Source: Takakia lepidozioides (taxonomy: Eukaryota > Plantae > Bryophyta). From it: a stretch of DNA of 64,000 bases. The stretch is taken from contig CM060734.1 of assembly GCA_030704615.1 (NCBI GenBank), forward strand, positions 50,778,001-50,842,000, read 5' to 3'. Below are positions 32,701-48,189 of the stretch, piece after piece; the stretch's first letter is position 1; every line of letters begins with the position of its first letter. The position numbers and the translations under genes are program-made. Under the pieces are notes generated by a model, which was not told the origin of the DNA, ran no database searches, and saw only the letters and a program-made list of their open reading frames with translations.

Positions 32701-33233
32701 TACAATGGCCACAGACGGCTTGCCACATGCCAAACTCCTTTAACAAGTGAAGGGCCAAACTCTTTGAAGGGTTGGGTGGCAGGTGTAATACAACCCCGTC
32801 CAATTATGATTATGCTAACACCTGCTTGGCTGGCATGCAGGTCCACACAATATTAGATGAAATTATAATGGGTGGCCAAGTTGTCGAAACTAGTACAGAT
32901 GAAGTTCTGAAGGCTGTTCAAGAGATCTGGAAGTAAGTTGCTTCAATCCTCCACCTACACTAGTTAATGTTGTTTCTGATTATGAGCAGGGACATTCTAC
33001 GGAACCTTTCTATCGAGGACAAGTGTTTACCCAGAGAACAATTTGTGTCTGAAGGGTCAAAGGGCCACAAGGCTACGGCAAACAACATCTTGTGACTACA
33101 TTCTGAAGGGTTAAATCTGTTGCTTCAATCTTTTTCACGACAAATCTGTGTGCGCTGATGCAGGTTGGAACGTTTTGGTGAGCTCTCGAGCCCTTCAGTG
33201 AAGGGGCTAGGCCATTACAAAAGCAAGACATAA
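29713..33233 (+). CDS. AP3S: AP-3 adaptor complex subunit sigma
   Basis: Exons 29713-29781, 29929-29971, 31364-31425, 32032-32128, 32267-32337, 32841-32932, 33164-33233. [75 protein letters not shown]. Confidence 0.93.
30382..30930 (-). mobile_element. LINE family A fragment (internally deleted)
   Basis: Matches 45215-45770 and 18410-18570; lies in AP3S intron 2. Confidence 0.85.
30944..31297 (-). mobile_element. LINE family A, 5'-truncated, intact 3' end
   Basis: Ends ...CTTATGAGTACAC on the element strand; TSD GGAGGAGGGAGA at 30932-43 and 31298-309. Confidence 0.9.
33058..33101 (+). mobile_element. 44-bp LINE family A tail
   Basis: GGCCACAAGGCTACGGCAAACAAC...GACTACAT with TSD TCTGAAGGGT at 33048-57 and 33102-11. 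Confidence 0.85.
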
Positions 33234-33448: not shown

Positions 33449-36400
33449 TCAAGATATCCAAGGTCGAACTGTTTCTATCACCTGGATCTGGCCACTTATA
33501 ACATTGCTGTATGTAGTCTACACCACGGAGATGTGCCCCACAGGCCATGGAGAAACACACAAGTTCATTTCACATTAAAGCCTAAAACCTTGCAACCATG
33601 GAAGACAGTCCTGACAACTACAAATGGTGAACGATTGCCATTAGAAAGCTACTTCCAATTTTGTTGGCATTTACACAGTACTTACATATCTCAAATCAGT
33701 GTCACTGCACAACTGCTGAGAAATCCCCTGGAGTTGCAGTAAGAAGTTACCCATTTCCTTGCATAATTTAGAGGGGTCAAAATTCGTCTTTCCACTTCCA
33801 CTCAGTGATTCACACTTCTGCTCTTGGGCAGCAAGGCTGTTATCATCAGTTTCCCAGGGATCCAGGGAGTGGGCCAACAGGCAGTAGAATGCAAGCTCCA
33901 GCTTCCCCTCAATTCTTTGCAGAAGAGAAATCAAGTCGGCCCCTGATTCTTTACTTCTTGCAACTGATATGACCATCTCTTTGGGAAGCCCTGCAATAAC
34001 TAGGCAAATAACAATCGGATGCAGCAACTGGTCCTCACCCTGCATGATTCTCAACGCTCCAGTCACCTTTTGTTCTGTAGTTCTTGTACATGCTTCAAGA
34101 TATACTCCGAGGCGCCCAATCAAACTCGGACAGAGGGAGACCAAGGAGATGGCCAGATCTAGCAGTAGAACCCACATAGTGGAGGTTTTCAACCTGTCCA
34201 TTCTTTCATTGAACTCCACCTCCAGAGACGCTAGAGGGATCGGCACCGACTTCTGTAGATCCTCCCTTTCCCGATGTGCAGCTCCACTCTCTGTTGTGGC
34301 CTTTTGGCCTGTTAACAATCTATCTGCTTTTGAGAACATCCTTTTATCACTACCAGTGCTTGTAAGATTTCGGACACCAATGATCTTCCTCCTGCTACTG
34401 GAACCAAGCTCCTTTGTTTCTAACCAAAGTGGATAATCAAGCACCCACCTTCTTTTGTAATCTGATCTTATCCATTTCCTTGCAAAGGCTTGGGGCCAGG
34501 TCAGTACAGCCTGAACCAGTAGCCCTGCAACTAGCTCTAGCAGCATATCAAAAAGCTCAAATCCGGGGCCTGAGGATGAAGAGTCCTGCTTATCACTGTG
34601 AGGTGCTGCAGCTATCTGTTCCAACACTCCTACAAGCTTATGCAATACTTTGTGAGATTGTTGAGACGACTTAGAGCCAGCTATTGCGTGTAGAAAATAA
34701 GTTCTTTGTAAAGAGCCTGAGCACAAAGGGGTACTAGTAAGCAGAGATTCTACAAGTACGACTGCAGCCAATCGTGGCATTTTCTTTGCTGCTTCTTTGT
34801 ATCCGTCCAAGACTCCATTGGGCCAGTCCCTGCTGCATAATCTTCACCCTCTTCACATCAGACAGCCAGTCACTTGAGCAACACAAGAAAAATATGAGAA
34901 AGGAACTCACAGCATGCCAGTGCATGTTCTCCATGCTATCCTCTCCAGATGCACACAGCACTTTGATCACGTAAATTACATCCAGAAGAATTGACCCAGC
35001 AAAGCACTACTTCATTTCCTGGAATGAGGACATTGGAGAAGAATAGGCCACCACGAGATGAATGGTGACATGATCCACTTCCTTGTCCGTAATTTTTGAG
35101 TTGCATCCTTACCTCCTCTCTATTACTCATAGCAACACCACTCCTTAGATGATACTCTGACAGAGTGAGAAGGCTTACTCTTGAGAGATAAGAAACTCGT
35201 GCATACTGCGCAAGTGGCGTATGCTTGTGAGAAACTCCTGACCCCAGGATGTAGCCGCAGTGTGCACAAGTGCAGTTACACGAGGGCCAACATAATTCCA
35301 AAAACGGACCCAGCTGGACATCAACATTGCGCTCCACTCACTCTCTACCTGCCAAGTTGAAGAAAATTTTGGCTGTGAAAAGGTGTATCATAAATAGGAT
35401 CATCTCGACAAATGCTATGTCTGGAAGATGAGATAGAATGTACTCATTGATCTTGTGTGGGAACGTAGACACCTTTCTCATGTGAGTCACAAACCCACCC
35501 AGAGGCAGTTGTGGGGTTTCAGCCCATCAGGATATAGGAGACACAACAGCAGTTGTCACTGTGCTTGTGCAGGGCTGATGACAACCAGCTACAGGGAGTT
35601 GAATGTTAATTTTATAGTTCAATTTATGCCATCCTTTGAGGCATGAGGCTGACTCCAACACTGCACCTTAGCCCCTCTAGCCGGCAGTAAACGTGAGGAG
35701 AGGAAAAAAGAAATTTATTGCAAGAACGGTTACCAGAGACGCATCTATGAGACATACTCTAAGAGAGTTCCACAAACTAAAAAGATTACCACTAAGCGGA
35801 GATTTTGAACATAAAACTCGAGCACTGGGAGAAGCTGGCCTGCAAAGTGTAAGCAGAAAGGGCCATCTGCTAACCAGCAGTGCTTTAGCACCTGCCACAT
35901 CTGGTACCACCTTCAGCAAGAATCACATGGTTAGACATATCCTTTCAGATGCTATTAGAGGGACCTGCAAAGTGTATCCTTAGTTACATGAGAGCCATTC
36001 CCCTATGCAACCTTGGCATTCACACCTTCTAGTGTCATTTAACTATCTCTGTAGTCACACCTTTTGAAAGCATGACTTATCGGGAGAAATTTCGACCCCT
36101 ATTGGTACCAGATTTGACTAATTCTCAAACTCTTAACAGCATGCTGCTACTCAAGTACTGACATTCTCAAAATGCAGACCTATTTCACAAAGGGGGCTCC
36201 AAAGGCATAATACATCCAGACACTTCCATTCATTATTGGGTTGGATTGAAAGAGAGCTAACCCCATAACTGGATCATTTTAAGGTTTTAAAATTTGAGCA
36301 ACTGGTGTGAGCAACAAGATAAGCGTGGACTTGCACGTGCTGTTTCTATGAAACTCACCTATGGCCGGACAAGAAATGTGGCACAGGTAGAGAAGATATG

Positions 36401-39400
36401 CAAGCCTTGAATCCACGAGCAAGGATAATTCCATCATGCATACTCATGTTGATGCACTGGTGTTCACTTGTGCACTCTAGTCTGTGCACAGCCTTAGCTC
36501 TCTTGCTTTGCTCATGGGACTCCAAGCAGTCCACAGCAACCTGCTCAAGCATTCACCCGAAGATCTCATTCTTAGCCATCACTCCAGGATCTGAATGCCT
36601 GTCTCCATGTGCTACAATGTAACTGTGTCATGTCTTGTTCCCTACCCTCTTTCTCTGCATGGGCCTCGCGTGATATATGTGCAGGTGCAGCCGAAAACAA
36701 TACCATACCATCCTTGGATTTGGCACACAGTATCACGTCATACTCAAGAAGATGGGATCATGTCAGCTGACACCTCTTTGACAGTGGCTAGTTCAGAGTC
36801 AAAAAACTGAAGACTGACAGAGTTCACCTTGAACTATTCACAGCCTATTAAGCTCCAAAATGTATGAGGAGGATACCGATGGCCTCTCAGCTCTGCTATC
36901 ATGAAGGTAGAAACAATCTCCTCCTAGAAGCTGTAAATATATGAAACATTCAGTTGGGCCTGAACTACAACACAGTTGACCCATTAGGCCGGTTATAGCC
37001 AAGAGGCACATGTCTCCCGAAACCTTGAGTCATAACGTCTACTGTTGGGCCATCACCAGGAAAATGCCAATAATATTCAAGACAACATGGCTTTTGCTAT
37101 CATTTCGATATTTCAAAGAGAGTGCATAACTAACGCAACGCACCTGCAGAAACCAAGGCTCATTGCCTGCATTCCAACTGGAAGAAGAAAGCTCCATAAG
37201 CAGCTGCAACACGGAATCTTTAACCTCACTGTGTTCACAGCCAATGTGGGGCTGTATCACTTCGTATACTCTGCCCCTTTTAGGGACTATATTATGACTC
37301 TCAGAAATGGCTACATTGAAGAAATGCCTCTTACTTCCTGAGCATGGGATGTTCCTGTCCTCACACGTGAAGGTTTTTGGGTTTGCACAATCATGTGAAC
37401 TCCCCTCTGGCTTTTCTTCTTCTACTAACCGGCCAAGGGGTTGCTCCTCAACAAGATCCACTCTTGAGCACACATCGTGAGAGCTCAGCAGCGCATGGGT
37501 CAGTGCTACACAGGCACGATTCCTATCCCCACTAAACTCTTTCCACAACAATCCCCATCCAGCATCTTTAAAACACTTCTCCGTCTCATTGCCAAAAGTC
37601 ATCCCACCCCATATAACATTACGAAAGAACAGGTGACGACTCTTGATCGAGATCAAATCACTGGAGCCTGTCTGAAGTTCCAACAGAATGACGTTCCTTA
37701 GAGAGAGGGGAGTTTTTGCAAGTAGGAGAGAACATAATGGGCTAGAAATCACAGCATTGCACAAAGCCAAGGCTTTTCTTCCACTATCAGATATTCCGAT
37801 GTTTGAGGTGGGTTCAATGTGGTGAGCAAGTGTCAGCCGATGCCAAAGCCACATGAGAAGGTGGATCAAACTCTTGGGAACATAAGCCACTGCACAGACA
37901 GACATGATACCAATAGCCCAAATGAGAGGATTATTCGTGACCATTGCACCTTTTCAAGCATCACTGCAGATAAGTGAGACCTAGAATTGACACGAGGTAG
38001 GACTCCCATTTGGAGGAGCCAGCATCTCTTTCAGGGTGTCTAAGGGGAACAAGAGTGAAAAATAGAGAGGGAATATTGGCTATATGTGGGACATACATAA
38101 GGATACCCATAGAATATGAGGTCATATGCAAATGGAGAAAGAGAAAGGCACCATGTACAAACCAAAAAAGGGGCCCACCAAATTTGCAGTCTGCGGCTGA
38201 GGCATCAGATCAGGCAGCCAAGATTTCCCACTCTCATTGACAAGAAGCCATTGCTCCCAGTATATTGAAGCATGTCGGAAGTAGCTTGCTGCAAATCGGG
38301 CAGTCCACAACAAATTGGCTTCACTGCCCAATGGCATCCTCTCCCAAAACTTGCTGATCCAGTGATAGCCTTTGGCTGGAGAGGTGACACTGGAATTCTC
38401 TCTCGAACTTTCCTTGTAGTCCACATCTGCCCGATTACCCTGAGTTAACTCCTCTGCCTTCAGGGGTTTCCCAGTGGTGGTGTTTTCCCAGGGTGCCTTG
38501 TCAAGATATGAGTACTGTCCTTTATAACAAGCCTCCCAAGTCCATTCCAGACATGGTTTGAGGTACATCCCAGAATGTCTTTCTTCACATTCTGTAGAAA
38601 GCTTCATTTCAAAGTGATTATCTCCACGATTATCCCCAGATTGCAATGCTGAAGTTTGATCCAGTTCCATACTCTTCTCATCCCCCACAACGCTGTTGTA
38701 GTTCCCCTTATCCTCTCTAAAGTGGTTTTCTCTTAGAACTTGTGAGGTGGTCATAAAGAGCATGAGAGTAGCAAGTGCTGCACACTGCACAGGAGTCAGA
38801 GAAGGCCCAATTGAGTGGCTAAACACTTGCAGACGCCTCCAAAGAGGCAGATGAAGACATGTGAAGCTGTGCAGCATTGCCACGTATGGGAGGCGCCATG
38901 ACCCCAAACTCAGATGATCTGACATATGATCTGTCACATCACAATTACACAGCAGCCATAAATGTCCCTGACCTGCTCTCTCTCTCTCTCTCTTTCTTGC
39001 CATGTTCCGCCAAAACTGGGCACAGTGTTTATGGCCACAGGGCTAGAGCAAACATCTCATGAGTACATTCTCTTTCTTGACATTGCATAAAACAACTTCT
39101 TAACAGTATCAGTTCTTTCTTGCCATCGATGAGTTGTTGTTGGGCTGCTAGTTGGGGGCCTCATTTTCTTTCTTGTATCCTGCTTTCTTTTTGTCCCATA
39201 AGCTCGTGGAGCTTCCTGTGCAATTTTTAAGTTTATTCTTTTCTATCTTTCTCTAGGTCGGTGATTCTACATCCTGTGCCTTGGGCTATTGGGCCTCCAG
39301 CAGACATGATACATTCCTTTCTTTCTGAGTTAGGAAGTAAAGTGATTCCTCAGTGAGACTCGTAACTGTCATATGCAAACAGCAAGTGTCTTTCGAACCT

Positions 39401-40541
39401 CTTGATTAAAACAGCTAAAGGAATTCCACTTTATCCCAGTAGTCATTATGCACATTGTCAGTAAAGGTCAAGGGCTGCTATGGTAACACCTGCAGCATGT
39501 GCATCACAGAATGCATCCAGCAGAAGCTCAATGGCTTCTTCTTTCCAGCCTTGACAGCTGGCATCACTTCCTTGCTGGGAATGGCAGGCCTGCCCTTGAG
39601 ATGTTTGCTCCACCTTCCAAATCCATAGTACCACATTTCAGTGGGCTATTCAAACATAATAACAAACTCTTCCTACATGGTGACCTGACCAAGAAGGCAG
39701 AATTGAAAATTCTCATCGCAGTCCGTCAACCCTCCCAACTATTGTAATCCCGACCCCTTCAAGCACGAGTCAATTACCTTTAGAAGACATGCTACACTGG
39801 AAGCAATTTGCCGAAGCAATTTCTCGATCTCCGATGGACCTGCAGTCACAAAAATAGAAAAGAGACAGACCTCAAATTAATAATACACAACAAGACTTCT
39901 CGTGATCAACTTCAACAAGGTAAGGCCATACGACACAAAGCGGCACTGGCGCCGCACAGAAATCCGCAGCATAACTTAACCACTGGCTTATAGCAATTGT
40001 GACCAAGATAAGCTCAATTTTGGTCAGTTCCAAGAGAAACAAAACATGACCTGATCACGACGAGAATGCATCTAAGCCCAGCTTGTAATTGCTTTCGGTC
40101 TGAAGAGGTCGGTCATGTTACCACACACACATTGCCATATAGGTAACATTTGAGCTGAAATTAACTATTGGGTTGTCCAGGATCAAGCAAATTCCGGTCA
40201 GTCGAAGAGTAACACAATGTGACCTGATCACATGGAGATAGGATCCAAATGGCTATCGGTCTGAAGACATCCTGCCTACTACACTGCATTTCACCTTACC
40301 GCACAAAATTCCCCTATAGGAAATATTCCTCTCCGCTGGATATTACAGAGCTTACCATGCTCGTTCGATTTGAAATCACAGCTGCCTAAAGACGTATCAC
40401 AAAAGAAGATAGACTCCTTTGGCCTCTTTTGACGAATAAAGTGTGTTCATTCTTCCCAAGGAAACAGAAAGAAGACGGTGCCTTACGAGATGAGGTCACG
40501 CACGATCGAAACTGCTCCAGCAGCGCTCGCAAGTCCTCCAT
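33449..40541 (-). CDS. Large helical protein, candidate Fanconi anaemia group A (FANCA)-like
   Basis: Long open exons (about 38250-38915, 37145-37960, 33686-34830) plus small GT-AG exons from a putative ATG at 40541 (MEDLRALLEQF). Several motifs are collinear with human FANCA as recalled (see findings). Both gene ends and some exon borders are tentative; the stop could be 33671. Confidence 0.55.
39000..39068 (+). mobile_element. 69-bp LINE family A tail inserted in a (TC)n tract
   Basis: Ends ATGAGTACAT; TSD TCTCTTTCTTG at 38989-99 and 39069-79. Confidence 0.85.
39165..39250 (+). mobile_element. Old copy of LINE family B 3' end
   Basis: TTTTGTCCCATAAGCTCGTGGAGCTTCCTGTG resembles the reverse complement of 57902-57933. 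Confidence 0.5.
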
Positions 40542-40934
40542 CGCATCGCTACGCTGCAGGAGCGAAGGAACTCGAGAGAAGCTAGAAGAGAGTCCCCATT
40601 ACCCCCCAGCAGGCTATTCATCCATATTCTGGATGGATAGTTTTCCTTCCCGTTGAGTGCGTCTCTTTGCATTCCTGTTTGTGGGGGTGGGTTGCAAAGC
40701 TGCTGCAGAATCCATGGTGTGGGTGGAGAACTGGAGCTGGGTAGACCAATCTGTGCCCGCATTGCACCTGCAATCAGATCAGGAGGATGCCGGGGAGGTG
40801 GGGGAAGCAGGGGTGTAGAGTACATTGGAAGAAACGGGGTGTGGAGGTGGAGAGATTCGTAGAGCCCTTTAGGGAGTAAGCACGCTTCATGAAGAGCGAG
40901 AGGAGGGACGGGAGAGAGAAGAGTGTGGAAAGAG

Positions 40935-48189
<7,255 letters not shown>

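Follow-up and report, generated by a model that had tools for sequence, protein, structure and literature searches.

The 64-kb window analyzed here (64,000 nucleotides of Takakia lepidozioides contig CM060734.1, assembly GCA_030704615.1, positions 50,778,001 to 50,842,000 of the forward strand; coordinates below are those of the window) contains a multi-exon gene on the minus strand, at 33671-40541, with nine exons and a coding sequence (CDS) running from 40541 to 33671. An earlier note, made from the DNA letters and a list of open reading frames (ORFs), had proposed the stretch at 33449-40541 as a candidate plant homologue of the Fanconi anaemia protein FANCA. The gene itself was confirmed by spliced RNA contigs and by a nine-exon ORF. 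In the ORF list, three long minus-strand open frames of 293 to 379 codons each were present between 33.6 and 39.0 kb. Spliced RNA contigs in two public runs from two studies (runs X1 and X2) demonstrated transcription, and seven of the eight introns were directly visible in them, as CT..AC on the plus strand and hence GT..AG on the minus strand. GT..AG ends were found in all eight introns. The exon 6/7 junction was the sole inferred one, combining a GTGAGT donor with the only acceptor that fits the phase past the last in-frame stop. The CDS totals 3390 nt and 1129 codons (1129 amino acids, aa), and frame tracking across the joined exons revealed a single stop, at the end. With its nine exons, the gene is intact and transcribed, and its 1129-residue product is predicted to be an all-helical protein of the HEAT-like solenoid type. 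The joined model was used for the frame checks and for local comparison with five retrieved proteins; the other searches were run exon by exon.

A phmmer search with exon 9 against 1.84 billion proteins returned only four true representatives (best E 2e-17), namely Physcomitrium patens LOC112292175 and three fragments, one of them traced to a contig from RNA-seq. Word-index searches with exons 5 and 9, whose length filter leaves out full-length relatives, gave no match. When LOC112292175 was itself used in a word search, it led to Ceratodon purpureus KC19_10G077600 (KAG0559083), a protein of 1002 aa that matched the window in seven tblastn high-scoring segment pairs (HSPs), exon by exon and in order from exon 3 to exon 9. 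In local blastp, residues 1-1055 of the joined window translation aligned with residues 4-966 of the Ceratodon protein at 32% identity (E 1e-155). Similarity to the LOC112292175/KC19_10G077600 group extended over the full length, in the same order and with common exon-level blocks, and by this sequence comparison the window gene is an orthologue of Physcomitrium LOC112292175 (XP_024396165-9) and of Ceratodon KC19_10G077600. The window protein shares with these orthologues the motifs GSWRLPYVAMLHS, WGLLWK..GDR.RAC, CWL.DGPF, YKR+W, and ELEF.ER, the first of which is unchanged across the window and the four aligned moss sequences. Unlike them, it is longer (1129 vs ~1002 aa), owing to additional stretches of low conservation in exons 4, 5, and 9, and the alignment showed an insertion of ~70 residues in exon 9 that is not present in the other mosses. 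The two Bryopsida proteins are much closer to one another (61-63%) than the window protein is to either of them, and its low identity to these two species fits a deep-branching moss. No relatives were found outside mosses, although the sole exhaustive search used the fast-evolving exon 9 and its result is therefore not evidence of absence. Metagenome scans for further relatives gave no confirmed locus. Because only mosses were available and the metagenomes added no loci, the alignments were shallow.

The N-terminal segment of this moss family matched the Pfam profile FANCA_arcN (PF24783), which has 235 positions and a curated cut-off of 27.2 bits. The Ceratodon protein passed the cut-off both at full length (34.9 bits, E 1.6e-8) and with residues 1-150 (37.8 bits, E 2.2e-9), as did Physcomitrium LOC112292175 (28.1 bits, E 2e-6). 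With residues 1-160 of the Physcomitrium isoform X1, the score was 33.6 bits (E 4.2e-8), and residues 4-144 were aligned on profile positions 3-156. A transcript from a third moss remained under the cut-off (22.1 bits, E 0.00013), and exon 4 of the window matched within the same profile positions as the orthologues. The next Pfam family on the N-terminal segment, Htt_N-HEAT_1, had an E-value of 0.018, seven orders of magnitude worse than FANCA_arcN. By these profile results, the first ~140 residues of the moss proteins match arcN, the N-terminal half of the arc formed by the FANCA C-terminal domain. In Xenopus FANCA, this domain spans residues 631-1402 (772 residues), with arcN at 632-900 and arcC at 901-1403; ahead of it lie an N-terminal domain and a helical subdomain at 530-619 (PMC7102982). 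Since the match starts at residue 4 of the moss protein and at profile position 3, the moss protein begins where the FANCA arc begins, and it is therefore without the first ~630 FANCA residues. The positions of the exons, of the arcN-matching segment, and of the upstream spacer are listed in Table 1.

Table 1. Exons of the FANCA-like gene, its arcN-matching segment, and the adjoining upstream spacer in the 64-kb window.
Feature	Position	Strand	Evidence and remarks
Exon 1	40485..40541	-	Start codon 40541, 19 codons; junction 40485/39837 in RNA contig; N-terminus aligns with Ceratodon and Physcomitrium protein starts
Exon 2	39776..39837	-	Both junctions in run X2 RNA contig; PSEIEKLLRQIA aligns with moss PSRIDRQLREIA
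Exon 3	39490..39611	-	RNA junctions; tblastn HSP of Ceratodon KC19_10G077600 at 39589-39494
Exon 4	38163..38930	-	In-frame donor 38163; RNA junctions; tblastn HSP (Ceratodon) 38964-38152, E 2e-44
Exon 4 segment matching FANCA_arcN profile positions 96-151	38737..38904	-	17.2 bits, E 0.0043; contains GSWRLPYVAMLHS
Exon 5	37142..37889	-	Helical core, then poorly conserved, probably disordered tail; RNA junctions; tblastn HSP (Ceratodon) 37890-37141, E 6e-26
Exon 6	36359..36538	-	Acceptor in RNA; donor GTGAGT at 36358 inferred; tblastn HSP (Ceratodon) 36558-36358
Exon 7	35787..35910	-	Acceptor 35910 inferred (AG and phase); donor in RNA; tblastn HSP (Ceratodon) 35912-35829, 54% identity
Exon 8	35179..35345	-	Both junctions in one run X1 RNA contig; tblastn HSP (Ceratodon)
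Exon 9	33671..34832	-	Stop codon 33671-33673, 386 codons; RNA junction; phmmer matches to moss proteins, E 2e-17
G+C-rich spacer between FANCA-like gene and divergent katanin p60 gene	40542..40922	.	380 bp; GC 0.56 at 40500-40999

On this evidence, the gene is probably a strongly diverged FANCA homologue made of the C-terminal domain only and conserved among the mosses sampled. Comparison with the vertebrate proteins (Xenopus 6LHS/6LHU and human 7KZP) showed common features beyond the match of the N-terminal ~140 residues to arcN from profile position 3. The moss protein is predicted to be all-helical, and its length after the match, once the inserts are discounted, is similar to that of the 772-residue arc; likewise, ~1000 residues less the poorly conserved inserts come near the arc length. 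Unlike vertebrate FANCA, the moss protein is without the N-terminal domain and helical subdomain (~630 residues), where Xenopus FANCA makes one of its two contacts with FANCG. It also differs in having no detectable arcC or other FANCA Pfam match and in carrying three long, poorly conserved inserts. The earlier candidate FANCA homologue is partly supported, by the N-terminal arcN match past the cut-off in the orthologues; the protein is not a full FANCA, and the pairs of human FANCA motifs on which the proposal had been based could not be confirmed.

These pairs had set seven window peptides beside stretches of human FANCA. The window peptides were all present at the places given, and six of the seven lie in the coding frame: LLWTARFAA...YWEQW in exon 4, VPKSLIHLLMWLWHRL, LSLRNVILLELQ..., and GDRNRACVALTHALLSSH in exon 5, FKACISSLP in exon 6, and LELAFYCLLA in exon 9. 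The seventh, LLVSRWPFLLTLCR (~35860), does not belong to the coding frame of exon 7, which gives WYQMWQVLKHCWLADGPF / WYQMWQVLKHCWLADGPFCLHFAGQLL and has KMEKVFKFCWLGDGPF as its moss counterpart; this frame is required by the phases of the two following exons, 8 and 9, and agrees with the moss orthologue sequence. None of the likenesses to human FANCA could be confirmed. All pairs sit downstream of the arcN-matching segment, where no profile search found FANCA, and a likeness above chance could not be demonstrated. The note had further suggested a HMMER comparison with the Pfam models of FANCA, and here the outcome was divided: arcN was recovered in the orthologues (28-38 bits), and Fanconi_A and Fanconi_A_N were not.

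At the end of exon 4, two alternative 5' splice sites were observed 16 nt apart on the minus strand (38163-38179). The run X2 contig used the in-frame donor at 38163. In the run X1 contig, the donor at 38179 was used, which shifts the frame and leads to a stop soon after the junction; this isoform may be unproductive, of the nonsense-mediated decay (NMD) type. In the transcript of the third moss (Logan contig of SRR21676477), this gene is split between two ORFs that overlap but differ in frame (2-724 and 688-2535). This change of frame, near the LVGPIF junction, occurs at the same place as the alternative donors in the window and is either real or introduced by the assembly. RNA contigs lying entirely within introns were also seen, at 35457-35692 and at 39071-39370, the former with both of its ends unmatched; intron retention, a transcribed repeat, or an independent small transcript could explain them.

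Several results weigh against a FANCA relationship. The FANCA signal covers only ~140 of the 1129 residues and only positions 3-156 of the 235 in the arcN profile, and exon 4 of the window, taken alone, scored 17.2 bits (E 0.0043), under the 27.2-bit cut-off. When one N-terminal moss profile was compared with the PDB sequences, a set of 177,635 that contains FANCA chains, the only match was Xenopus FANCA (6lhs_B, 713-792, inside arcN); the alignment was in the expected register, with GSWRLPYVAMLHS against GQWPTLYVKMLCG, at a noise-level E-value of 3. The match was gone with a longer N-terminal profile. Direct sequence similarity between the solved FANCA chains and the moss family was likewise noise-level. 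Region profiles of exon 4C/5, exons 6 to 8, and exon 9, which together cover every motif of the earlier note, found no FANCA among the PDB sequences, nor did the full-length moss profile, and phmmer with the three long window ORFs gave no FANCA there at E≤10. In Pfam, segments 186-1002 of Ceratodon KC19_10G077600 matched no family at E≤10, and the same was true of window exons 5-9. ArcC and other FANCA models such as Fanconi_A (PF03511) gave no match, in searches with HMMER on shallow alignments, which is weak at this distance. Fanconi_A_N, the N-terminal domain with the N-terminal FANCG contact, was without a match in the Pfam scans of the window exons and of the Ceratodon orthologue. Finally, this genome, of which only the 64-kb window was read, has no known FANCG or FAAP20 partner.

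The structural comparisons, which the earlier note had proposed as an AlphaFold and Foldseek check, belong with these results in that they lent the FANCA reading no support. AlphaFold2 gave for the Ceratodon orthologue (13-row alignment) a predicted local distance difference test score (pLDDT) of 43.9 and a predicted TM-score (pTM) of 0.29, and for its C-terminal 306 residues a pLDDT of 42.3; both models were unusable. These low-confidence models (pLDDT 42-44) were all-helical, with about 39 helices. With the pLDDT-44 model as a query, Foldseek against the PDB returned generic HEAT/ARM rows only, at E≥0.085. As a test of the FANCA fold, this comparison is uninformative, not negative. The ESM-Atlas features suggested generic large solenoids: the Ceratodon orthologue fell nearest to Nckap1-like clusters (0.90-0.91), with 144 shared features where 170 are typical of a true family. 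Exon 9 was placed near Med23, Urb2, and Nckap1 clusters (0.87-0.88), with a recognition value of 1118, under the reliability mark.

Many of these results would also be expected if the protein were a moss-specific alpha-solenoid without Fanconi function, in which the N-terminal three or four repeats resemble arcN by chance, by convergence, or as an isolated common domain, and the other ~85% is of different origin. The restriction of the signal to two thirds of the arcN profile, the lack of any match for the remainder of the protein, the noise-level reverse comparison with vertebrate FANCA, the finding of relatives only in mosses, and the failed fold test all agree with such an origin. Against it stand the Pfam matches in two species (E 2e-9 to 4e-8), past the cut-off and in a consistent register, to which the third moss transcript and exon 4 add matches to the same profile positions under the cut-off. 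In addition, the match sets in right at the beginning of the profile and of the protein alike, no other family comes near FANCA_arcN, and the length of the remainder suits the rest of the arc. Arabidopsis FANCC (At3g60310) offers a precedent: it has 16% identity to human FANCC and was scored at 94% by HHpred, yet it interacts with FANCE and FANCF, and the mutants have the same meiotic phenotypes (PMC10085685). In view of this 16% identity, the failure of plain hidden Markov models (HMMs) on the remainder of the moss protein is expected even for true homologues. FANCC is a Fanconi core subunit that had long been listed as absent from plants and could be recognized only by profile and structure methods. 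It is a different subunit of a different module, occurs in flowering plants, and has been genetically tested, whereas relatives of the moss gene were found in mosses only. We regard a moss-specific solenoid as the main, though less likely, alternative.

If the protein instead belonged to one of the other known families of large helical scaffolds, for example Nckap1/HEM, the subunits of Mediator or Integrator, or the importin-like proteins, this would account for the ESM-Atlas neighbors of the Ceratodon protein and of exon 9, and for the transportins and armadillo proteins among the top Foldseek rows. Generic HEAT/ARM solenoids (transportins, importin-alpha, Nckap1) do have the same helical-repeat architecture as the moss protein. 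However, the likeness to them comes only from low-confidence models and feature vectors: the ESM-Atlas values lie under their reliability marks, and the Foldseek rows were obtained with the pLDDT-44 query. None of these families appeared in Pfam at E≤10, so that a family-level sequence match is absent. Membership of this kind was rejected as quite improbable. A decaying or non-functional gene is more improbable still. The frame-shifting donor in the run X1 contig, 16 nt upstream, might suggest decay, but the other isoform is in frame and agrees with the moss junction LVGPFF|VAYVP, the ORF is unbroken across 3390 nt, two studies contain its spliced transcripts, and conservation with the other mosses is collinear over the whole length. 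For practical purposes, a pseudogene was ruled out.

If the whole moss protein is a diverged FANCA homologue consisting of the C-terminal arc alone, it would, by analogy with Xenopus FANCA, act as a dimerizing solenoid scaffold of a Fanconi-type core complex. The contact with FANCG through the C-terminal repeats would perhaps be kept, and the N-terminal domain, which provides the second FANCG contact in vertebrates, would be missing. It is conceivable, and we propose it only tentatively, that a functional equivalent of the FANCA scaffold persists in mosses in the form of this dimerizing C-terminal arc. Together with the plant FANCL, FANCC-E-F, and FANCM-MHF, it would give the land-plant ancestor a near-complete, animal-type core complex that was later trimmed towards Arabidopsis, and FANCA would have originated before the split of plants and opisthokonts.

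FANCA has generally gone unrecognized in model flowering plants, as the earlier note had stated and as the literature consulted bears out. Reviews of plant DNA repair and the primary papers give FANCA as missing from plants: Girard et al. 2014 marked FANCA with '-' for Arabidopsis (PMC4132730, Table 1), and no further core subunits seem to exist in this species (PMC10085685, discussion). A full-text literature search retrieved no paper in which FANCA is connected with mosses or Archaeplastida and none describing the moss orthologues. A significant arcN match in a conserved, expressed moss gene would mean, if the gene is a true FANCA, that at least part of the FANCA-FANCG-FAAP20 module is older than land plants and was lost, or diverged past recognition, in Arabidopsis. 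A natural FANCA of the C-terminal arc alone would moreover reveal which FANCA functions require the N-terminal domain. This significance is tempered by the extent of the signal, only ~140 residues, and by the fact that the moss orthologues are already flagged by automatic UniProt/Pfam annotation; their UniRef name is 'Fanconi anaemia group A protein arcN subdomain domain-containing protein'.

Upstream of the FANCA-like gene, a katanin p60 gene was identified on the plus strand at 40923-44500 (KATNA1_MIT domain, E 7.5e-14; AAA domain, E 4e-25), divergent from the FANCA-like gene. The spacer between them is likely a bidirectional promoter. Because the divergent katanin gene lies 380 bp from the start codon, no more 5' coding exons are expected; with the matching N-termini of the moss proteins, this excluded hidden 5' exons coding for a FANCA N-terminal domain. 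On the other flank, the plus strand at 32772-32936 carries the last coding exon of a gene for a clathrin-adaptor small (sigma) chain (Clat_adaptor_s, E 1.7e-6), which converges on the FANCA-like gene at its 3' end. Recurring ORF ends with similar termini were found on the plus strand at 32967-33095, 44675-45187, 45916-46197, and 46317-46487; they look like copies of the 3' part of one retroelement. A GT/CA dinucleotide microsatellite, read as THTHTHTH / VCVCVCVC in the ORF translations, is located at ~41030-41110 in the region of the first katanin intron.

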